In this document: positions 12,516 to 58,655 of the stretch, in pieces | Layout of the letters: every line of letters begins with the position of its first letter | Numbering within the stretch: position 1 is the first letter of the stretch | Assembly: GCA_964234715.1 (NCBI GenBank) | Contig: OZ174279.1 | Length of the DNA stretch: 64,000 nt | From: Podarcis melisellensis | Lineage: Eukaryota | Direction: 5' to 3' (one strand) | Notes under the pieces: generated by a model | The model's input: only the letters and a program-made list of their open reading frames with translations | Databases searched by the model: none | What the model was told of the DNA's origin: nothing | Program-made: the position numbers and the translations under genes

Positions 12516-48801
<36,286 letters not shown>

Positions 48802-49574
48802 GNNNNNNNNNNNNNNNNNNNNNNNNNNNNNNNNNNNNNNNNNNNNNNNNNNNNNNNNNNNNNNNNNNNNNNNNNNNNNNNNNNNNNNNNNNNNNNNNNN
48901 NNNNNNNNNNNNNNNNNNNNNNNNNNNNNNNNNNNNNNNNNNNNNNNNNNNNNNNNNNNNNNNNNNGATATATAAAGTTTGCCGGGAGTGTTGCGGGGAG
49001 GGGAACTACAGAAATGACAGCCCGTCATTTGTGAACAGGCCTGGAACAAATTTATTTCTTGGAATATACTTCTGTGTTGATCGACATTATGTAATATACA
49101 TGTATCTATATAACATCACATACAAGTTCTGATGCTGTGTTTGCTGCCAGATACTGTGCTTAAAGGAAGGAAGGTACTGTTGTTCCCTCAACAGCCACTG
49201 GGATTACAATCATTGTGTTTGGTCTGTGGGGTAAACCACAGTTATTCACCTTTTAGTGGAATGAAGAATCTTCTGTACCAAGACATGTTGGCATATTCTG
49301 GGCATCAACGGTACCTTGCAGAAACCTTGAGGGAAAATATCCTATGGGCTGATCAGTGCCTCTCAATCGAAGATTTGCCCACTTCCAAGCTGAGACGGAG
49401 AGCAATCTTTATGGATTACTGGATTATTATTTTTTTGAAGCTGGAGAGTTTATTGAGGCTTATACCGACCATCATTTTTGAACTCGCATAAGTCAGCCAT
49501 TCTTGACTGTGGATCTTCCAGACTTGCATCCTTTTGCCCTTCTAAGAGACAATTGATTGTGCAACGTTGAAAAG
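48802..49574 (+). other. EPHA4: EPHA4 proximal 3'UTR (rest of exon 17), ending at a candidate splice donor
   Basis: Follows the stop codon, has no recognisable repeats, and ends at AAG|GTCAGT (49574/49575). Confidence 0.65.
48803..48966. other. Assembly gap (164 N)
   Basis: Run of N. Confidence 1.
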
Positions 49575-49635
49575 GTCAGTGGGACTATGGTTTCCCCTTT
49601 CATTGTGATAATGGTGGCTTCATTTCCTTATCAGT

Positions 49636-49641
49636 AATAAA
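49636..49641 (+). terminator. Candidate proximal (intronic) polyadenylation signal
   Basis: AATAAA 61 nt downstream of the UTR donor, followed by T-rich (49691) and GT-rich (~49720) tracts. Confidence 0.35.
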
Positions 49642-52174
49642 AGAGAATGCACTGATGGGATGTAGCTAGTAAAATACCCTTCCCCCCCCCTTTTTAATTT
49701 AGTAAGACAATTTTTCTAGATGTTTGTTTTCTACATATCGTGGAGGGCATAAGATTTCATTAGTTGACTCCATCAACCAACACTAGAATGTATGAAATCT
49801 CTGCATTGGAAATCACTTTTGTAGGTCTGTGTAGGATGAACTTTACACAACATTTTGTGGTGTGCAGATTACATGGTTCAATTCTGCATGCATTGGGCTC
49901 TACACACATAGGTACCTATTTCATTATGACTCATATAGTCCATGGCACATAAAGAAAAAATGTTGACATGGGGGAAAACCACCAAAGGCCTAGGAAAAAT
50001 CTGTATTAGTTTGCTACATAAGAAGCTTGACAGGAACTACACCCCCACCCTAAATTAATATGCTTATTTTATAAGCCAGTCCCACTAGCTACCTGTTCGT
50101 TATGTGAAAATTCACTTATCAGAACGTAAACTTTATGCCCAGACATCGCTATACACTTCATAGATTCAGATTTCTGAATAGCTGGAGTTTGGCCACTTTT
50201 TTACTTCCTTGCTTTGTTCTGCTTTGTTGAGGAAGTCATTTTCAGGCAGAAACCATGCAGGGCGGGAAGGCAGGTGCAATTTTTGGACGAATCAGCGAGC
50301 TGGAGAGATTGGACAAATAAGTTTTCCCCTTTGTCTTTCTTCTGCTGGTAGGCTGCAGCCTTTTCAGGAAGAAATTATGGAGGAGTGGGGGGAGAGATTG
50401 GACAAATCCCTGATTAGAAATGTTCCCATAGGAAATAATGGAAATTGTGGACTTGCTATGCGAACATTCACCTAATGAACGATTTCCAAGGAACACATCC
50501 AAGGGGCCTGCATGTATTTATCCTTCTTAACATCACTGAGAGTTGGAAAAGTGCTGTATGCTCCAGGCTCACTTGCCAAGCTGTTTATATCAATCAGACT
50601 TTTTTTAAAAAAAAATTTAAATTAAAATCCTGCTCTCTGCATTGTATGTTCCTTGTCTATTTAGAACAAATATTAGATCAGCACAAGGAGTGCTGATGAA
50701 AGGGAAAATGTTTAATTTACAGCTGTACCCTTTTTACTTTGATCTGTCATTCAAAAGTGGTGCACAACCCAACTTCATCTGTGTTTATCTGGAAAACCCT
50801 CTCAGTTCAATGAGGCTCACTCCCAAAGAAGAGATTACAGCCTCAGATCTAGATCTTGGTTCATTTTGCAACCAGAAAAGTGTTCAGGAATGAAAGAGAA
50901 TCAAACCTATTGATGATTTGGTGTAGAGAATATGAGTGTCATAAGGTGAGGCCACCTGCTAGAAGTATTTCAGCGGAGCTTATTATTTTGAGGATGGCAA
51001 TATCACCTATTAGGTTTTCAGCTTTGATTTTCCCCTCTCTCTAGTTCTATCTACTCATGACAGCAGCTTCAGCACAAAAAGAGAATGACACTCAGGTTTG
51101 ATTTGTTAGAAATCACTGCACTTATTTGGAAGCCAGGAGCACTGAGTGAATTGAACGAGTCAAACTTGCCATATTCCCAACGTCACTCTTGTCATTTTTT
51201 GTCACTTGCAACAACAACTTACCATTTTTAACCACAAGCTTCCCCTATAAACTTGATTCTGAAAGCAAATGGTTGCGAACATGGGATGCTAAATTTGGAT
51301 CCTGTCAAAAACTGTGACAGCTTAGTAAAACCTCTTAGCAGAATTACCCATAAAAGCTTTTCATGTTGAAGACTATGGAGGTGTGTGTTCCTGAAAGGTG
51401 ACTTAAACAGTCATATTTTAACACATTTGCTGGTGAATGTTAGTCTTTGAGTTTTCCTGAAAATATTAAAGTCTTCCTCAGCCAAATAAGAATGGAAGCG
51501 CATCTCCCCCACTTCCTAAAACTTTTCCCAAAAAGCAGCTGGTGTGTGGGTATGTATGTTTGCATGAAAATTCAGATTAGAGTTAGACTCGGGGAGATGG
51601 GCTTTTATAACACCCCCCATGCTGTTAACCCAACTTAAAATGGTTTCCTCCAAGTTTCTATGTTTTTTTTAACCCTAAAAGGACAAATAGCAACTTCATT
51701 GAGAATGTTTTTACTGGGAAAAACAGCATGGCATTAAATTTCATCTCCACCCATTCCAAATTATTTGATTCTCCAGGTTTCCGCCCTCAAATTTAAAGAG
51801 ATCTTATCAGACCATGTTTAATTTTGTTTTGAAATGCAGAGAAATTTGGGGCCTCTCTTCCCAACCTGCAATGATGTAAGCTATATACATGTAGTCAAGT
51901 ATATAGACATACTTGTTTTGAACATACTTGGCTGAACTAGGATACAGCCAAAGAATGATTACCATGGACAATGGACTAAACCATGATTTAGCACTATGTT
52001 TAAAAATCAGAATGGACCTGAGTAAAGCCTCAGTCACCCTCTCACATACAAACCCCTCTCCAAATCTTATGTGGCTGGGAGAAGGAATTTGCCAGTATGT
52101 ATTTTCCCTTTCAAAGAATCCTGGCTTAGTGTTACACAGAAATCAGAAATTGTGGCTTAGCACAAATTCTAGAC

Positions 52175-52310
52175 CAGGCTTCCTCAACCTTGGCCCTCCA
52201 GATGTTTTTGGCCTACAACTCCCATGATCCCTAGCTAGCAGGACCAGTGGTCAGGAATGATGGGAATTGTAGTCTCAAAACACCTGGATGGCCGAGGTTG
52301 AAGAAGCCTG
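52175..52310. mobile_element. Palindromic hAT MITE
   Basis: CAGGCTTCCTCAACCT...AGGTTGAAGAAGCCTG; TSD ttctagac/gtctagac. Confidence 0.85.
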
Positions 52311-53329
52311 GTCTAGACAAACAATTCACCTTTGGCTTTGTGAAGCTGGCTTATTATCAAATTCACCAGAGCTTGTTTTAAACCACTGTCTCTGATTCAT
52401 ATCAAATCCTAAAAGAGGATTCTTTGAAATTAAACTAAACAAATCCCTTCTCCAAACCATGCAAGAGACAGAGAGTGCTCCAAGGCTCCAGTGAGGTATG
52501 TTATAGGTGTGTGGAACCTTTTTCACCCAATGGGTCAGATATTTATCTCCTCCAACCTGCTTTAGCAGGTGGGTAGAACCACCCACCTGTCAATCATCTG
52601 ATGTCAAAATGGTCCTGTCCATGTGTTGAAATTGACCTATGGGGATGAGGGGAGATATTGACCAAGCAGGAGTGAACTTTCTGCCCACCGGTTGATGAGG
52701 AGGGAGTTCAATTCTGCTGTGTTTGGCTACATAGCTGAGTTCCACATGGGGAATGCACTGGTTGCAGCTGATCATCGCAGAAAGCAGGATTGAACTCCCC
52801 ACCCTACAAGTCTTGACAGGAGTGCAGTCCTTCTTTCTGCAGGGTTCAGCTGTGCGAGCAAGCAAATAAAGTGTCAAATATTCAAAACAGGAGATAATGT
52901 CATTAATCTGTTGGCCCCTCTAGCACAGAAATATTGAGCGATTCTAGGAAAACAGCAACAGGCTCACACATCCCTCCTCAGATTTCTAGGGTAAACTCTC
53001 CTGTCTCCCCTACGCTGATTTGTGAGCCTCAAACATAAAAGGAACTTTATCAACATAAAATGCTGCCTTAAGCAGTGTCCATCTAGCCTGGGATTATCTG
53101 GTACTGGCAGTGGCTTTCCAGGTCCTCAAGCGAGATTCCTTTGTGTAATCAGGAGATTTCAGAGTATTGAATCAGGGACCTTATGAATGCAAAGCAATCA
53201 TAAACTGGCCTACAGTCATGGCTATAATAATTCAAGCAGATGATAGGCTGAAAAAGGCATTCCAATCCTCATCCTAGCATTGGCTGCTCAAAATAGCAGG
53301 TCTTCCCATGTGGTGACCCATTTGAACCA

Positions 53330-53699
53330 GTGTGGACCCTGTGATCATAACCTGAGGCCCTTTGTGTGCCTCTTCCATGAGAGGTCTAGAGAGAAGCAAC
53401 ATGAAAACAGGCCTTTTCTGTGTTGGCTCCCCATTTGTGGAATGCTCTCCCTGGGGCGGCTCGCCTGGCGCCTTCACTGTCTTTCTTTAGGCACCAGGTG
53501 AAAACATTTCTCTATAACCAGGCCTTTACTGATTAACACTTTATGGCCTTCAAAATGTGTTTGTGGGAGGAGAGTTATTAGTTTGTTTTCGTTTTCATTT
53601 TATTATGTATTTTGTGTTTTTACTTTGTATGTTTATGTTGTGAACCGCCCTGTGATCTTCAGATGAAGGGTGGTATACAAATGTAAAATAATAATAATA
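53330..53699 (+). mobile_element. L2 3' fragment
   Basis: aggccttttctgtgttggctccccatttgtggaatgctctccct (RPFLC/AFSV..P.LWNALP-like), tgtgaaccgccctg...ggtatacaaat and an (AAT)n tail. Confidence 0.7.
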
Positions 53700-53725
53700 G
53701 TTTGATGGTTGTCTTTTTTAAATAG

Positions 53726-56310
53726 GGAAAATGGATCCTGCTTTCTTGGACTCAGCCCTTCCTGGTGCCCATGTTGGCCTTGGATGATAACAGGCCAGAG
53801 ACAAAAGCCTTCCAGTGTCCCGGTTTACTCAGCACTGAAGATGGACTACATAAGCAGCATTGCTCCCTGAAGAGTGTCTCTTTGGCTTTCTTCTTTTTTT
53901 CTATTTTTTTCTTTTCCTTTTTTTGTTGTCAGCAACAAAACTGAAAGATGAAATGGCCCAGATGCGGCTCTTTCATTGCCACTTGAGGAATGTACTGTAT
54001 CAAAGCCCTACAGACTTCTCTTTCCTCGCTCCATTTATTTAATTTTTGTGTAAGTGCGTGTTCTCTCTTCTTTTTTTCTCCTGCATGTCACTGCTGCATC
54101 GGTATGAGTGCAAGTAGCAGAGCTCTACATGTCATAACGATGGACGCCAGGGTTAGGTGCCGTAGCACAGAGCCCAGTTCACAAAAGCTGAGACTGCGTG
54201 GGACAGTGAAGTGATCCTTTACAGGGGGAAAAATAAGTGTGCCATTGCGATAATATCGATATTTTTTAATAGAATGGAAAATAACTTATTATCTCTTCCG
54301 GGAATGTGTGAGTGTGTACGTATGGCCTTGGGTGTGTGGGTGTGTGCTTCTGTGTTGCCTGTTGCCCAGGGCCACCTGTGAACATGCAGATAGCATCTCA
54401 GAGAACTTGGCGGTTGTTGCTGAGCTGTTGAGTTTCCAGGCCAGTAGGTGAGCTATGCAACGGTGGCGAGAAAACACACACACTCCAGAATGTTACAGTC
54501 CTGTATCTATTCATGTATTATGTAGCTGCCACACTAACCTTAACAAATAGTTATTCAGCCTAGAGCAGGGGCGCCTTCACTCGAGTTGTGGAGTGATCCA
54601 TTGTGAGTTCCATAACTGTGATAAAGAATTCGATCGATGACCATTAGTCTTGTCGAGGCCTGTTCATTATCGAAGCAGCAGTACCTTAAGGGGGAAAGTA
54701 GGTGGAGATGAAGTCTTCATCCATCAGCGGGTTGTTTTGAACTGAACTATTAAATAGCTTTTTTTTCTCCCCCGCCTTGGAAAAAAAAAGCTTTGAGAGA
54801 CTTGATGAACACAAACAGAAATATGCAATCCTTATCCATTCACAGAAGTAAATTATTCAGTGTGCCACCTGCAAGGAGTTTGGGGCCCATGAATGATTGT
54901 TGAGCAAACTGTTTTATTTTCTCCCACGTTAAAGAATACAAAAGGTTTTGAAGGTTTAAGCAAGGGATTTGCAAAAAAAACAAAAACCCCTTTCATGTTC
55001 CTCTCATAGATAAATTGCAATACAGTTTGCAATAAGTGGTAATGACCTACCAGTCCTATCTAGGAAAGTTTACAGAGTCTGGAGAGTTCACTGTTAATTT
55101 TCTGAAGACTGTTCTTGGAGGCGAGCTGAATGCAAGAGTCTGGGGAATGGACTGCCATTCCACATTTTGAGCTCAGCAGTTGATGTGCTCGACCTGCTTT
55201 CTGGTCACAGAAGACTCTTCCCTACTGAGATACAGTGCAGCACATCAAGCTGAAACAGGACAGTCAAACCTACATGCCTGGCGGGGGGAAATCAAGGAAA
55301 AGAATGTGTAAATATTGCATTTAAAATGCTTGGCATTGAATGAGGCCCTAAAACAGTTTCTCTGGAGTTTATTCTTCATCCTCACCTCTCCCTCCCCCCT
55401 GTTTCTTCCTTTCCCATTTCTAAGGTTATTTTTTTGGTCTGATGAACACAAAATTGAAGATCAGTATTTCTCGGTTTGTGTAGTTGTGCTGATGGCAGGA
55501 CACAGCACTGTCAAGGAGCCGGGGGGCATAAAGTGTTGTGAACTGCAAACCCAGCATTCTCGGATTGCAGTCAAGTGTACTAAACTGAGCTTGGATGGGT
55601 AGAAAGACACAACACACTAACAACCTAACAACAACCAAAAATTGATAAGAGAACTGGCCTCCATTTCTTCCTGGTTAAAGATGAGGCATCAACAGGACTC
55701 CAAAACAGCAAACCTCCATACATTAGAAAATTGTTCTGCTCACAACCCCACCAGTTGATGTTTGTCCAGGTTTTTGCTGTATTAACTTTGTGATGGATCT
55801 ATGTATTAAATATATATATATGTATAAAACAAAAAGAAGAAGAAGCTGGTTCTTGCCAGTGAACAGGACTTCAAAGCAGTATTTTTCTTTTACGTGACAT
55901 TTTCATAACCAGAAAGAAAGCATCCTGAATACTAATTAGACAGATTTAAAAGAGAGAGAGAGTGCATTTATTTTTTGGTATCACTACAAGTATGTTGGAA
56001 TATGCAAGGACTGTGGTTTAAAAAAATTAGAATGTATGAGGCATATGATAATTTAGTCCATTCTGGGGAAGAAGAAAAAAATCTTAACAATGCATTGCTT
56101 GGTTCGCAGATTTGAATGAAATCTTGGTTAGAAATATAGATTTTCTATTTTGTTTTAATTTGTAATTTTTCCCTCGCCATCAATCTTAGGTACACATAAC
56201 TTATGTCATTTATTTATGGTCTTTTATACCTAGTTTGTAAAATTGTAAAATAGCAAGCTAAATGCAAAAGTTTGCATTTGAAAATAATAAAGTAGTTGCT
56301 GTACAAATCT
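53726..56310 (+). other. EPHA4: EPHA4 terminal non-coding exon (distal 3'UTR, exon 18 equivalent)
   Basis: Branch-like tttgat (53701-53706) and gtcttttttaaatag| acceptor; no recognisable repeats over ~2.6 kb; both ends resemble the human EPHA4 UTR as recalled; ends at AATAAA. Confidence 0.7.
56286..56291 (+). terminator. Distal EPHA4 polyadenylation signal
   Basis: AATAAA in ...tttgcatttgaaaatAATAAAgtagttgc, preceded by TGTA motifs; resembles the human EPHA4 mRNA end as recalled. Confidence 0.8.
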
Positions 56311-58655
56311 CAAATGTGATTCCTGTTATTAAATATAACTAGCCTTCCCTGCTACTTTCAGGTCTATACTGCACAAAATCAAACTATACTATTTTACTGA
56401 ATGAGTAGAAGAGTCAAAGCATTATCTTCGTGCGCACAATATAATTCGGACCATATCACTACAAAAACCTATAGAAAGATAGCATCTCAAGGAGAAGTCT
56501 AGGTCAGAATTCTCAGTCTTGGTATCTGGTTTTCTGTGTGTAGATATTTATTTTATATAGAGAACAATTCAAGCATGTTGCTTCTTCCCATTTCAGCTTG
56601 AAGTAGTATAGTCCAGAATCAGGTTTACCACCTTGTATCCATTGGGTGAATTAGCTCATGAACCACTGAAAATAATGGAAAAAGTAAAGTACCACTGAGA
56701 CTTAAGGCTCCTCTACACTCACCTTTTGCCCTGCATTTTCTAGGGACAAATCCATGCTTTAAGGCATTGTGTCCAAATGCTTCCCCTCCCAGTGTTTTCC
56801 CCATGAAAACCCATTATTGAATGTTAATTGGAGCCAACAACAATTTGGGTTTTCCGCAGATGGCTGTTTACTGGATCAGACCAAATGCCCAACTAGTCCA
56901 GCATCCCATTCTCAAGCAGAATCTACATGCAGAATCTACATGCAACACCACTCTCCTCACATGTGATTCCCAACAACTAACATTCAGAGACATTCAGCCT
57001 TCAACACTGGAGGTAGAACATAGTCATCATGACTTAAAGTCATTGATAGCTATATCCTCCATGCATAAGGACATGGTTGAAGGTACCAGACTGCGAGAGA
57101 AGGAAGGATGTGTCTGCAGTCTCTCAAAACAGCGGTCACATTTTTCCCTTGGCCACTCTCCAACTTTCCCAGGCAGGATGAAAGAACAAGGGCATAAATA
57201 TTAATCCTATCATACAGATCCTTATCATAAATGGAAGAACATCTAATCCAATACAATCAGTTTTTAGTTATGCAACTCAGTTCTCTGTTGAATGGCATTT
57301 CAATTTCAGGTCCATAAAAGATTTTATCGAACGGAGTACTTGGAACCGAACAAAGTCGTTAAATAATAATAATAATAAATAACCTAAGGAACATGCTTAG
57401 AAGTGAACAGGTACTAATCTCATTTAAGATGTGTGCCTGGCTCTCTGCAATTTACATTCCTGAAAGGTTTTGTTCTTGCTGTTTAGATTTGACATAAATC
57501 AGAAGTGCACACCCAACTATGCATTGAGAGGAAAGACATACAAATGAAGGAACACATCTGGAATGGAACACCTGTCACCTAATTCAGCAACTTTCAAAAG
57601 TTCACCTCCCGAGGACCTCCACAAGCAAATTGATAAACAAGGAATAACAACCATACCCTCTTTACAGTCACTAGCAGAACAGGAATCTTACCTGTTTACC
57701 TAAGTATGCATTGAAAAGCTGACAAATATGCAAAATTTCACCATTGGTCACCTGAATATAATTACAATATTGCAGATTAAAGCATATTAAGAGGTACCTT
57801 AACTTTGTTATGAAACTCGAAAATCCACCACAGTCAAGGATCATAGATCAGTTAATTGATCCTCCCCTTGTGCAGCCAAGATTACAAGCAGATGGCAGTG
57901 CCTATTGCTACCCCAACACTGAGCTAGACAGATCAGCGGAATAAATGTCTCACTGGGTTCCTGCTTTACCTTAACAAGGAAGGACTCGCAGAAGATCAAA
58001 AGCATTATCAAAATGTTGGTAGTAGCTCCATCTTCCACAAGCACCACGAGTCAATCAAACTACTGAAATTATATTAAATGGAGAGGAAACATGAACTTGC
58101 TGGCTGTCTCATAAAATGAAGGAGTGGAGCCACTGAAGCGTTTGCTTCACAAGCAACTGAGTGAGATTTTTAAGGACTGTAAGTCCTTAAAAAGAGGCAT
58201 TCTGAGGGCATGGCAAGGCCAGGACGGGGCTGGGGGACCGATTCTCTCTGCCTAGCTGAGTCAGGCAGACTGGCAAAAAGATTATTGTAAACTGACCTCA
58301 ATTTCAAAGCCCTGTTTTCCCTCTGACAACCTTGGGCTGCTTCATCTGGCAGTAGCCTTGCTCCAGAATGGGGTTTGGATGTGGCATGACTTTACACCAA
58401 TTTAACTTATACCAGCTTCATTTACGTCAGCTTCTTGTGTCCTAAACCCCTCAGGAAAGAACGGTAGAACAGGACCTGGTCTGGAGAATAAAGGCACTGT
58501 CAGGGTATATATTTTTGCTTTCTCGTCAAGAAATTTGTTTTGAGATCAGAAGGCAGGCCTTAAGGGGGTTGAGGCGAAGGGCTTTGTTAGCAGTGCTTGA
58601 CCCTCCTCCTTGACATCTGGGCCTGCTCTTATGCCCATGAGAAGAGGTTCCTTCC

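Follow-up and report, generated by a model that had tools for sequence, protein, structure and literature searches.

The EPHA4 gene of the lizard Podarcis melisellensis very likely carries a genuine and efficiently spliced intron of 4.15 kb that lies wholly within its 3' untranslated region (UTR). The 3' end of the gene is found in a stretch of 64,000 nucleotides (nt) of contig OZ174279.1 (assembly GCA_964234715.1), hereafter the window, and the intron had been proposed in a preliminary description made from the letters of this stretch, which placed it far downstream of the stop codon. That proposal holds: the borders, 49574 and 53726, are exact, and splicing between them is shown by an assembled contig from a public sequencing run (X9) in which both flanking exons are deeply covered and the unique part of the intron is not. 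A UTR intron of EPHA4 already figures in the annotation of the human gene and in a catalogue published for the whole genome, so that the feature is no new discovery; what the lizard sequence adds is described below, beginning with the layout of the 3' end.

48211..48366, plus strand: second-last coding exon of EPHA4 (exon 16, part of the SAM domain), 156 nt, from its translation
48687..48801, plus strand: last coding stretch of EPHA4 (exon 17), with the tail ...GRMVPV and the stop codon TGA at 48799-48801, from its translation
48803..48966, no strand: run of N (assembly gap or masked), 164 nt, early in the 3'UTR, from the sequence
48967..49574, plus strand: 3'UTR part 1, continuing the last coding exon to the donor; X9 contig over 48967-49572 at depth 87, 64% alignable to the squamate contig L001
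49572..49581, plus strand: 5' splice site AAG/GTCAGTG, cut at 49574/49575, with C at +3; from the letters, identical in contigs L001-L006
49575..53725, plus strand: 3'UTR intron, 4151 nt, GT..AG; joint in the X9 contig
53701..53725, plus strand: 3' splice signals, namely branch-like TTTGAT, pyrimidine tract tgtctttttt and AG at 53724-53725; from the letters
53726..56310, plus strand: terminal non-coding exon, 3'UTR part 2, 3' end approximate; X9 contig over 53724-54766, next contig from 54793

The donor 10-mer, AAGGTCAGTG, occurs a single time in the window, and its position and its distance of about 770 nt past the stop are as first described; the C at +3 is its sole departure from the consensus, so we grade it as good and not, as had been claimed, as strong. 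On the other side the acceptor reads ...tgtcttttttaaatAG and then GGAAAATGGATCC, cut at 53725/53726, with the yUnAy-like TTTGAT at 53701-53706, 20 nt upstream of the acceptor, in line with the branch-like motif and the acceptor end at 53725 of the preliminary description. Both splice sites are downstream of the main stop and the donor lies at least 50-55 nt past it, which places the intron among the distal 3'UTR introns (3'UIs); the distance from stop to junction comes to at least 608 readable nt, or about 773 nt with the estimated length of the gap. UTR part 2 is about 2.6 kb long and has an AATAAA at 56286-56291, and the 3' end of the exon is approximate. Within UTR part 1 (48967-49574) a scan for AATAAA and ATTAAA returned none.

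Evidence for splicing

Public runs were sought for 48967-54966, and four of them were compared, three with small contig sets and one DNA run (X19). The small-set runs, with 65-153 million letters against about 1300-1500 million for DNA runs, contain 0.16-0.32 of the words that were sampled; exons make up 0.31 of the stretch. In one of the three, X9 (organism B), a 1705-nt contig with a depth of 87 lies on 48967-49572 and 53724-54766, and at its joint 4151 nt are left out, with GT..AG ends (cut +2), placing the joint precisely at 49574/53726. The junction that the preliminary description had proposed to look for is thus present. Depth in X9 is 87 on both sides of the joint, whereas the first intron bin has 2.6 and the unique intron bins have 0; such depth on both exons against none on the unique intron is the pattern of RNA and one that DNA would hardly give. 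The contig's divergence from the window, at about 1.4% of positions, points to a close relative or another population as the source of X9. By contig depth, and in this one run, retention is at most about 3%, and the intron looks constitutive.

An acceptor at 53933, which had been offered as an alternative, was rejected, as the X9 contig leaves it unused and takes 53726 instead. Further downstream the X9 contig breaks at 54767-54792, at a T-run/A-run (ttttttttctcccccgccttggaaaaaaaaag), and the next contig has a depth of 158 versus 87; the break and the step in depth could be due to internal priming or 3' bias and not to an isoform boundary. The DNA run X19, near-identical to the window, covers 50419-53621 and has no GT..AG joint, and in X1 and X2 (organism A, about 5% divergent) the intron is present in pieces at a depth of 3-5 while the exons are mostly uncovered.

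Identity of the gene and continuity of its last coding exon

The borders of exon 16 can be read from the letters, with AG at 48209-48210 upstream and GTAAGT from 48367 downstream. When its peptide was compared with solved structures, the top match was the EphA4 SAM domain 1B0X (E-value 2.3e-28), and the runner-up was the paralogue EphA7 (E-value 1.8e-14); the domain is thus closest to EphA4 among the Eph paralogues, and the tail ends in VPV, the two features by which we assign the gene as the EPHA4 orthologue. PF00536/PF07647 are present in the relatives described below. The codon split between the last two coding exons (48365-48366 / 48687) is GAC, giving the junction peptide ...HMNQDDLARIG..., and the stop codon TGA occupies 48799-48801, one base earlier than the 48802 given in the preliminary description.

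Since the stop codon precedes the run of N, the frame across the gap is irrelevant to the protein. For the UTR the gap does matter, and two observations bear on it: its flanks are collinear on single contigs of two other squamates, where they lie 138 nt (L006) and 142 nt (L001) apart, and the spliced X9 contig extends 59 nt beyond 48967 into the place of the gap. Taken together, these make the stop exon and 48967-49574 very probably one exon.

Conservation of the intron

Relatives were found by a search with the exon-16 peptide alone, which returned genomic-type Logan contigs, whereas a search with the exon-17 peptide, extended by four upstream codons, returned no candidates. The contigs compared were L006 (3072 nt), L001-L005 (up to 9297 nt) and L007 (5549 nt, noisy and with frameshifts); no contig among them had a human appearance. 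Left out were P0002, P0003 and P0005, metagenome contigs (JGI/ENA) of 1-2 kb that are 92-94% identical, too short to reach the donor and possibly mammalian or human contamination. The tail peptides read ...ITALAHQ... in L001-L005, with a squamate-type A in common with the window, and ...ITAVTHQN..., which is non-squamate, in L007.

Within squamates, L001 follows the window collinearly over exons 16 and 17, UTR part 1, a single block in the intron and several in UTR part 2, and the final ~590 nt of the UTR are 84% identical between the two. The alignable share to L001 is 64% for UTR part 1, 4% for the intron and 52% for UTR part 2, and the intron itself measures 4151 nt in the window versus 2197 nt in L001. 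The distance from stop to junction is 773 nt in the window (with the gap estimated), 760 nt in L001 and 752 nt in L006. L001-L006 share the donor RAAGGTCAGTG letter for letter, with its odd C at +3, across three squamate species (L001 3656-3666; L006 2777-2787), and L001/L002 retain the acceptor AG and the opening letters of the exon, GGAAA(A)TGGAT..TGCTTTC, with unalignable sequence upstream. Identity falls off at both borders: relative to L006 it is 81% over the last 100 exon nt, 9/10 over the first intron letters and 47% over intron positions +11..+110, and relative to L001 it is 32% over intron positions -110..-11 and 63% over the first 100 exon nt.

Beyond squamates, L007 has a consensus-like donor, CAAG/GTAAGA, 787 nt past its stop and in a roughly corresponding place, with no squamate GTCAGT. 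Local alignment of this contig gave two competing placements, and CAAG/GTAAGA was picked by reading, MAFFT placing it about 10 columns off; with this offset, and with a contig that ends before any acceptor, the L007 donor is only suggestive. The human gene, which we take to comprise 18 exons (17 coding) with about 3.3 kb of 3'UTR, agrees with the 772 + 2585 nt seen here. In the portion of Supplementary Data 9 of Riley et al. (NAR 2025; PMC13223760) available to us, the human transcript ENST00000281821 of ENSG00000116106, which is EPHA4 (PMC6381284), stands among the 'broadly expressed' transcripts with 3'UTR introns (there termed 3UI), for bladder and brain, with at least three entries.

Splice positions therefore match within squamates; beyond them the correspondence is a donor within ~10 nt in L007 and a human listing that comes without a position. 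Evolutionarily, then, the intron is probably ancestral and not a lizard novelty: its retention is supported within squamates, where the splice sites are kept, and is consistent with the human annotation. The preliminary description had dated it to the amniote ancestor, a claim that the splice sites sustain as far as squamates reach and that, outside them, is suggested by the L007 donor and the human listing.

Repeats and a conserved block within the intron

The intron is mostly lineage-specific repeats plus one conserved single-copy block, and three elements were delimited in it: the block, a repeat resembling a miniature inverted-repeat transposable element (MITE) and a repeat resembling a short interspersed nuclear element (SINE).

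51040..51420 (approximate), no strand: single-copy conserved block with an invariant 22-nt core, GATGCTAAATTTGGATCCTGTC; X19 depth ~50, the single-copy level
52168..52317, no strand: palindromic MITE-like repeat with a 20-nt loop between 65-nt arms (85% complementary); summed contig depth in X19 ~2.2 million
53400..53699, no strand: SINE-like repeat with an (ATA)n tail, borders approximate; X19 depth 45,000-55,000

Depth is very high at 52167-52366 and 53367-53766 and moderate at 50167-50566, 52567-52766 and 53167-53366. Transposons had at first been recognised only between the splice points, at 51970-53699; they are indeed confined to the intron, and they spread more widely in it than that range. 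The MITE-like repeat has very high depth in the presumed RNA runs too; it is among the most abundant elements of the genome and appears to be transcribed. Between the end of the (ATA)n tail and the acceptor AG there are only 26 nt, with the repeat just clear of the branch point and pyrimidine tract, and the 3' splice signals have thus tolerated a very close SINE-like insertion.

The single-copy block is 75% identical to the squamate contigs L001/L003 over 173 nt (blastn), a conservation about that of the UTR exons, and over 51082-51243 the contigs of organism A differ at just 1-2 positions, compared with about 5% in the rest of the intron. The block was also considered as a cassette exon, a reading rejected because no flanking AG/GT signals were seen, and an Rfam scan of 48000-57000 found no family. 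The block may be a regulatory or splicing element.

Alternative explanations for the joint and for its role

Several points weigh against a genuine UTR intron in this gene. The spliced form was seen in a single contig, taken from a single run of a related organism, and not in raw reads of this animal; the RNA status of X9 is a guess of the analysis tool; and contigs cannot yield isoform ratios. The missing exon cover in X1, X2 and X19 is probably due to a record filter, so that these runs neither confirm nor deny the joint. Because of the run of N, this assembly does not by itself prove that the stop and 48967 are continuous, and the human listing in PMC13223760, as far as the portion available to us goes, records an intron 3' of a reference stop and gives no position, by a method that could in principle flag a transcript relative to another reference isoform. 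In a rival account the joint would be an artefact of assembly or library, or come from a retrocopy, and the true UTR would be unspliced or end early. An AATAAA does stand at 49636-49641, 62 nt into the intron, where it could give a short unspliced UTR isoform, and X9 has its cover of 2.6 just past the donor, both of which, with the single contig and the guessed run type, would fit such an artefact. Early polyadenylation at this signal was nevertheless rejected, as the AATAAA is unconserved in L006/L001 and the 2.6 compares with 87 on the exons. The joint also has exact GT..AG ends, equal depth on its two sides and zero on the unique intron; conservation holds at the splice sites but not in the intron; and the published catalogue has a human EPHA4 transcript with a UTR intron. 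We consequently regard an artefact as very improbable, and the efficiently spliced 3'UTR intron as by far the better account of the joint.

Functionally, an intron in this place raises the possibility of nonsense-mediated decay (NMD), which can be triggered by an exon junction more than 50-55 nt past a stop codon; the junction of EPHA4, about 750-790 nt past its stop, falls under this rule. The last coding exon continues for about 750-770 nt past the stop and is followed by the 4151-nt intron and by a 2.6-kb terminal exon with a conserved UTR end and AATAAA. Splicing would then deposit an exon-junction complex (EJC) about 24 nt upstream of 49574, too far out for terminating ribosomes to reach, and the retained EJC could, by the 50-55-nt rule, render the EPHA4 mRNA sensitive to NMD. 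As an NMD substrate EPHA4 is a rule-based prediction, and a limiting of local EphA4 synthesis in axons is speculative. That the mRNA is a physiological substrate of EJC-dependent NMD or translation-dependent decay, Arc-like and limiting the EphA4 made per mRNA in axons or dendrites, for example, strikes us as unlikely, and we are slightly more doubtful still that the intron and its GTCAGT donor have been kept because the EJC ties decay or localisation to the first rounds of translation. If this were true, each EPHA4 mRNA would give receptor only briefly, in one short burst in axons or dendrites, placing a guidance receptor under control of the Arc/Robo3.2 type. In favour of a decay substrate are the position of the junction, at least 608 nt (about 773 nt) past the stop, and splice sites retained throughout squamates and probably in amniotes. 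Among distal 3'UI genes, a subset responds to loss of EJC or UPF1 (PMC7310861), and a weak hint comes from zebrafish, where epha4b (ENSDARG00000011600) is up 1.6-fold (log2 fold change 0.71, adjusted P value 3.5e-6) in mutants of the EJC core gene magoh at 21 hours post fertilization (PMC7310861 S2, mg21_upregulated). That gene, however, appears in just one of the three up-regulated lists, amid hundreds of changed genes, and any UTR intron in epha4b is hypothetical. As a class, moreover, transcripts with exclusively 3'UTR introns (e3UIs) do not rise on UPF1 knock-down, whether the junction is above or below 55 nt from the stop (PMC13223760); the human transcript with the intron is a major, broadly expressed form, and the spliced form is abundant in X9; and in the open-access literature we found no report that connects EPHA4 to NMD or to a UTR intron. 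Given that it is the spliced form that is abundant, any effect of NMD on the EPHA4 mRNA is most likely modest tuning or absent.

We lean instead towards a real intron whose role is independent of NMD, be it a neutral relic in an mRNA that escapes decay, an aid to export, translation or localisation, or a means of removing a destabilising sequence, as in HRAS. The behaviour of the e3UI class is in line with this, as is HRAS, where splicing protects from UPF1 (PMC13223760), and so are the abundance of the spliced form in X9 and an intron interior that evolves freely, at 4% alignable and 4151 versus 2197 nt. Against strict neutrality stand the C-at-+3 donor, letter-identical in three squamates, and the conserved block inside the intron, which together hint at constraint beyond neutrality.

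Comparison with known systems

The dosage of EphA4 counts in axon guidance, synaptic plasticity and motor-neuron disease, and a built-in post-transcriptional limiter would for this reason be of interest. The structural premise of such a limiter, a constitutive exon junction far past the stop, is sound and ancient, while current class-level data give no reason to assume that EPHA4 is sensitive to NMD. The closest counterpart is the human transcript ENST00000281821, from the same gene, which has an intron 3' of the stop in its major transcript and is expressed in brain, the listing giving no position for that intron; the lizard UTR intron, for its part, is filled with squamate repeats.

Arc/Arg3.1 (PMC5934489, PMC5797788) is likewise a neuronal mRNA with constitutive splicing far past the stop, at a distance that falls under the 50-55-nt rule. 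It differs from EPHA4 in having two short UTR introns and in that NMD and translation-dependent decay have been shown for it, whereas for EPHA4 they are predicted from the rule only; in addition, Arc belongs to the immediate-early genes and EPHA4 encodes a steadily expressed receptor. The e3UIs of HRAS and CTNNB1 (PMC13223760) resemble the EPHA4 intron in having both splice sites within the UTR and an abundant spliced isoform, but they are alternatively retained, with splicing protecting the mRNA from UPF1, whereas the EPHA4 intron looks constitutive. With its junction at least 50 nt past the stop, EPHA4 fits the class of distal 3'UI genes described for zebrafish, mouse and human (Gangras et al. 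2020, PMC7310861), a subset of which is sensitive to the EJC and NMD.

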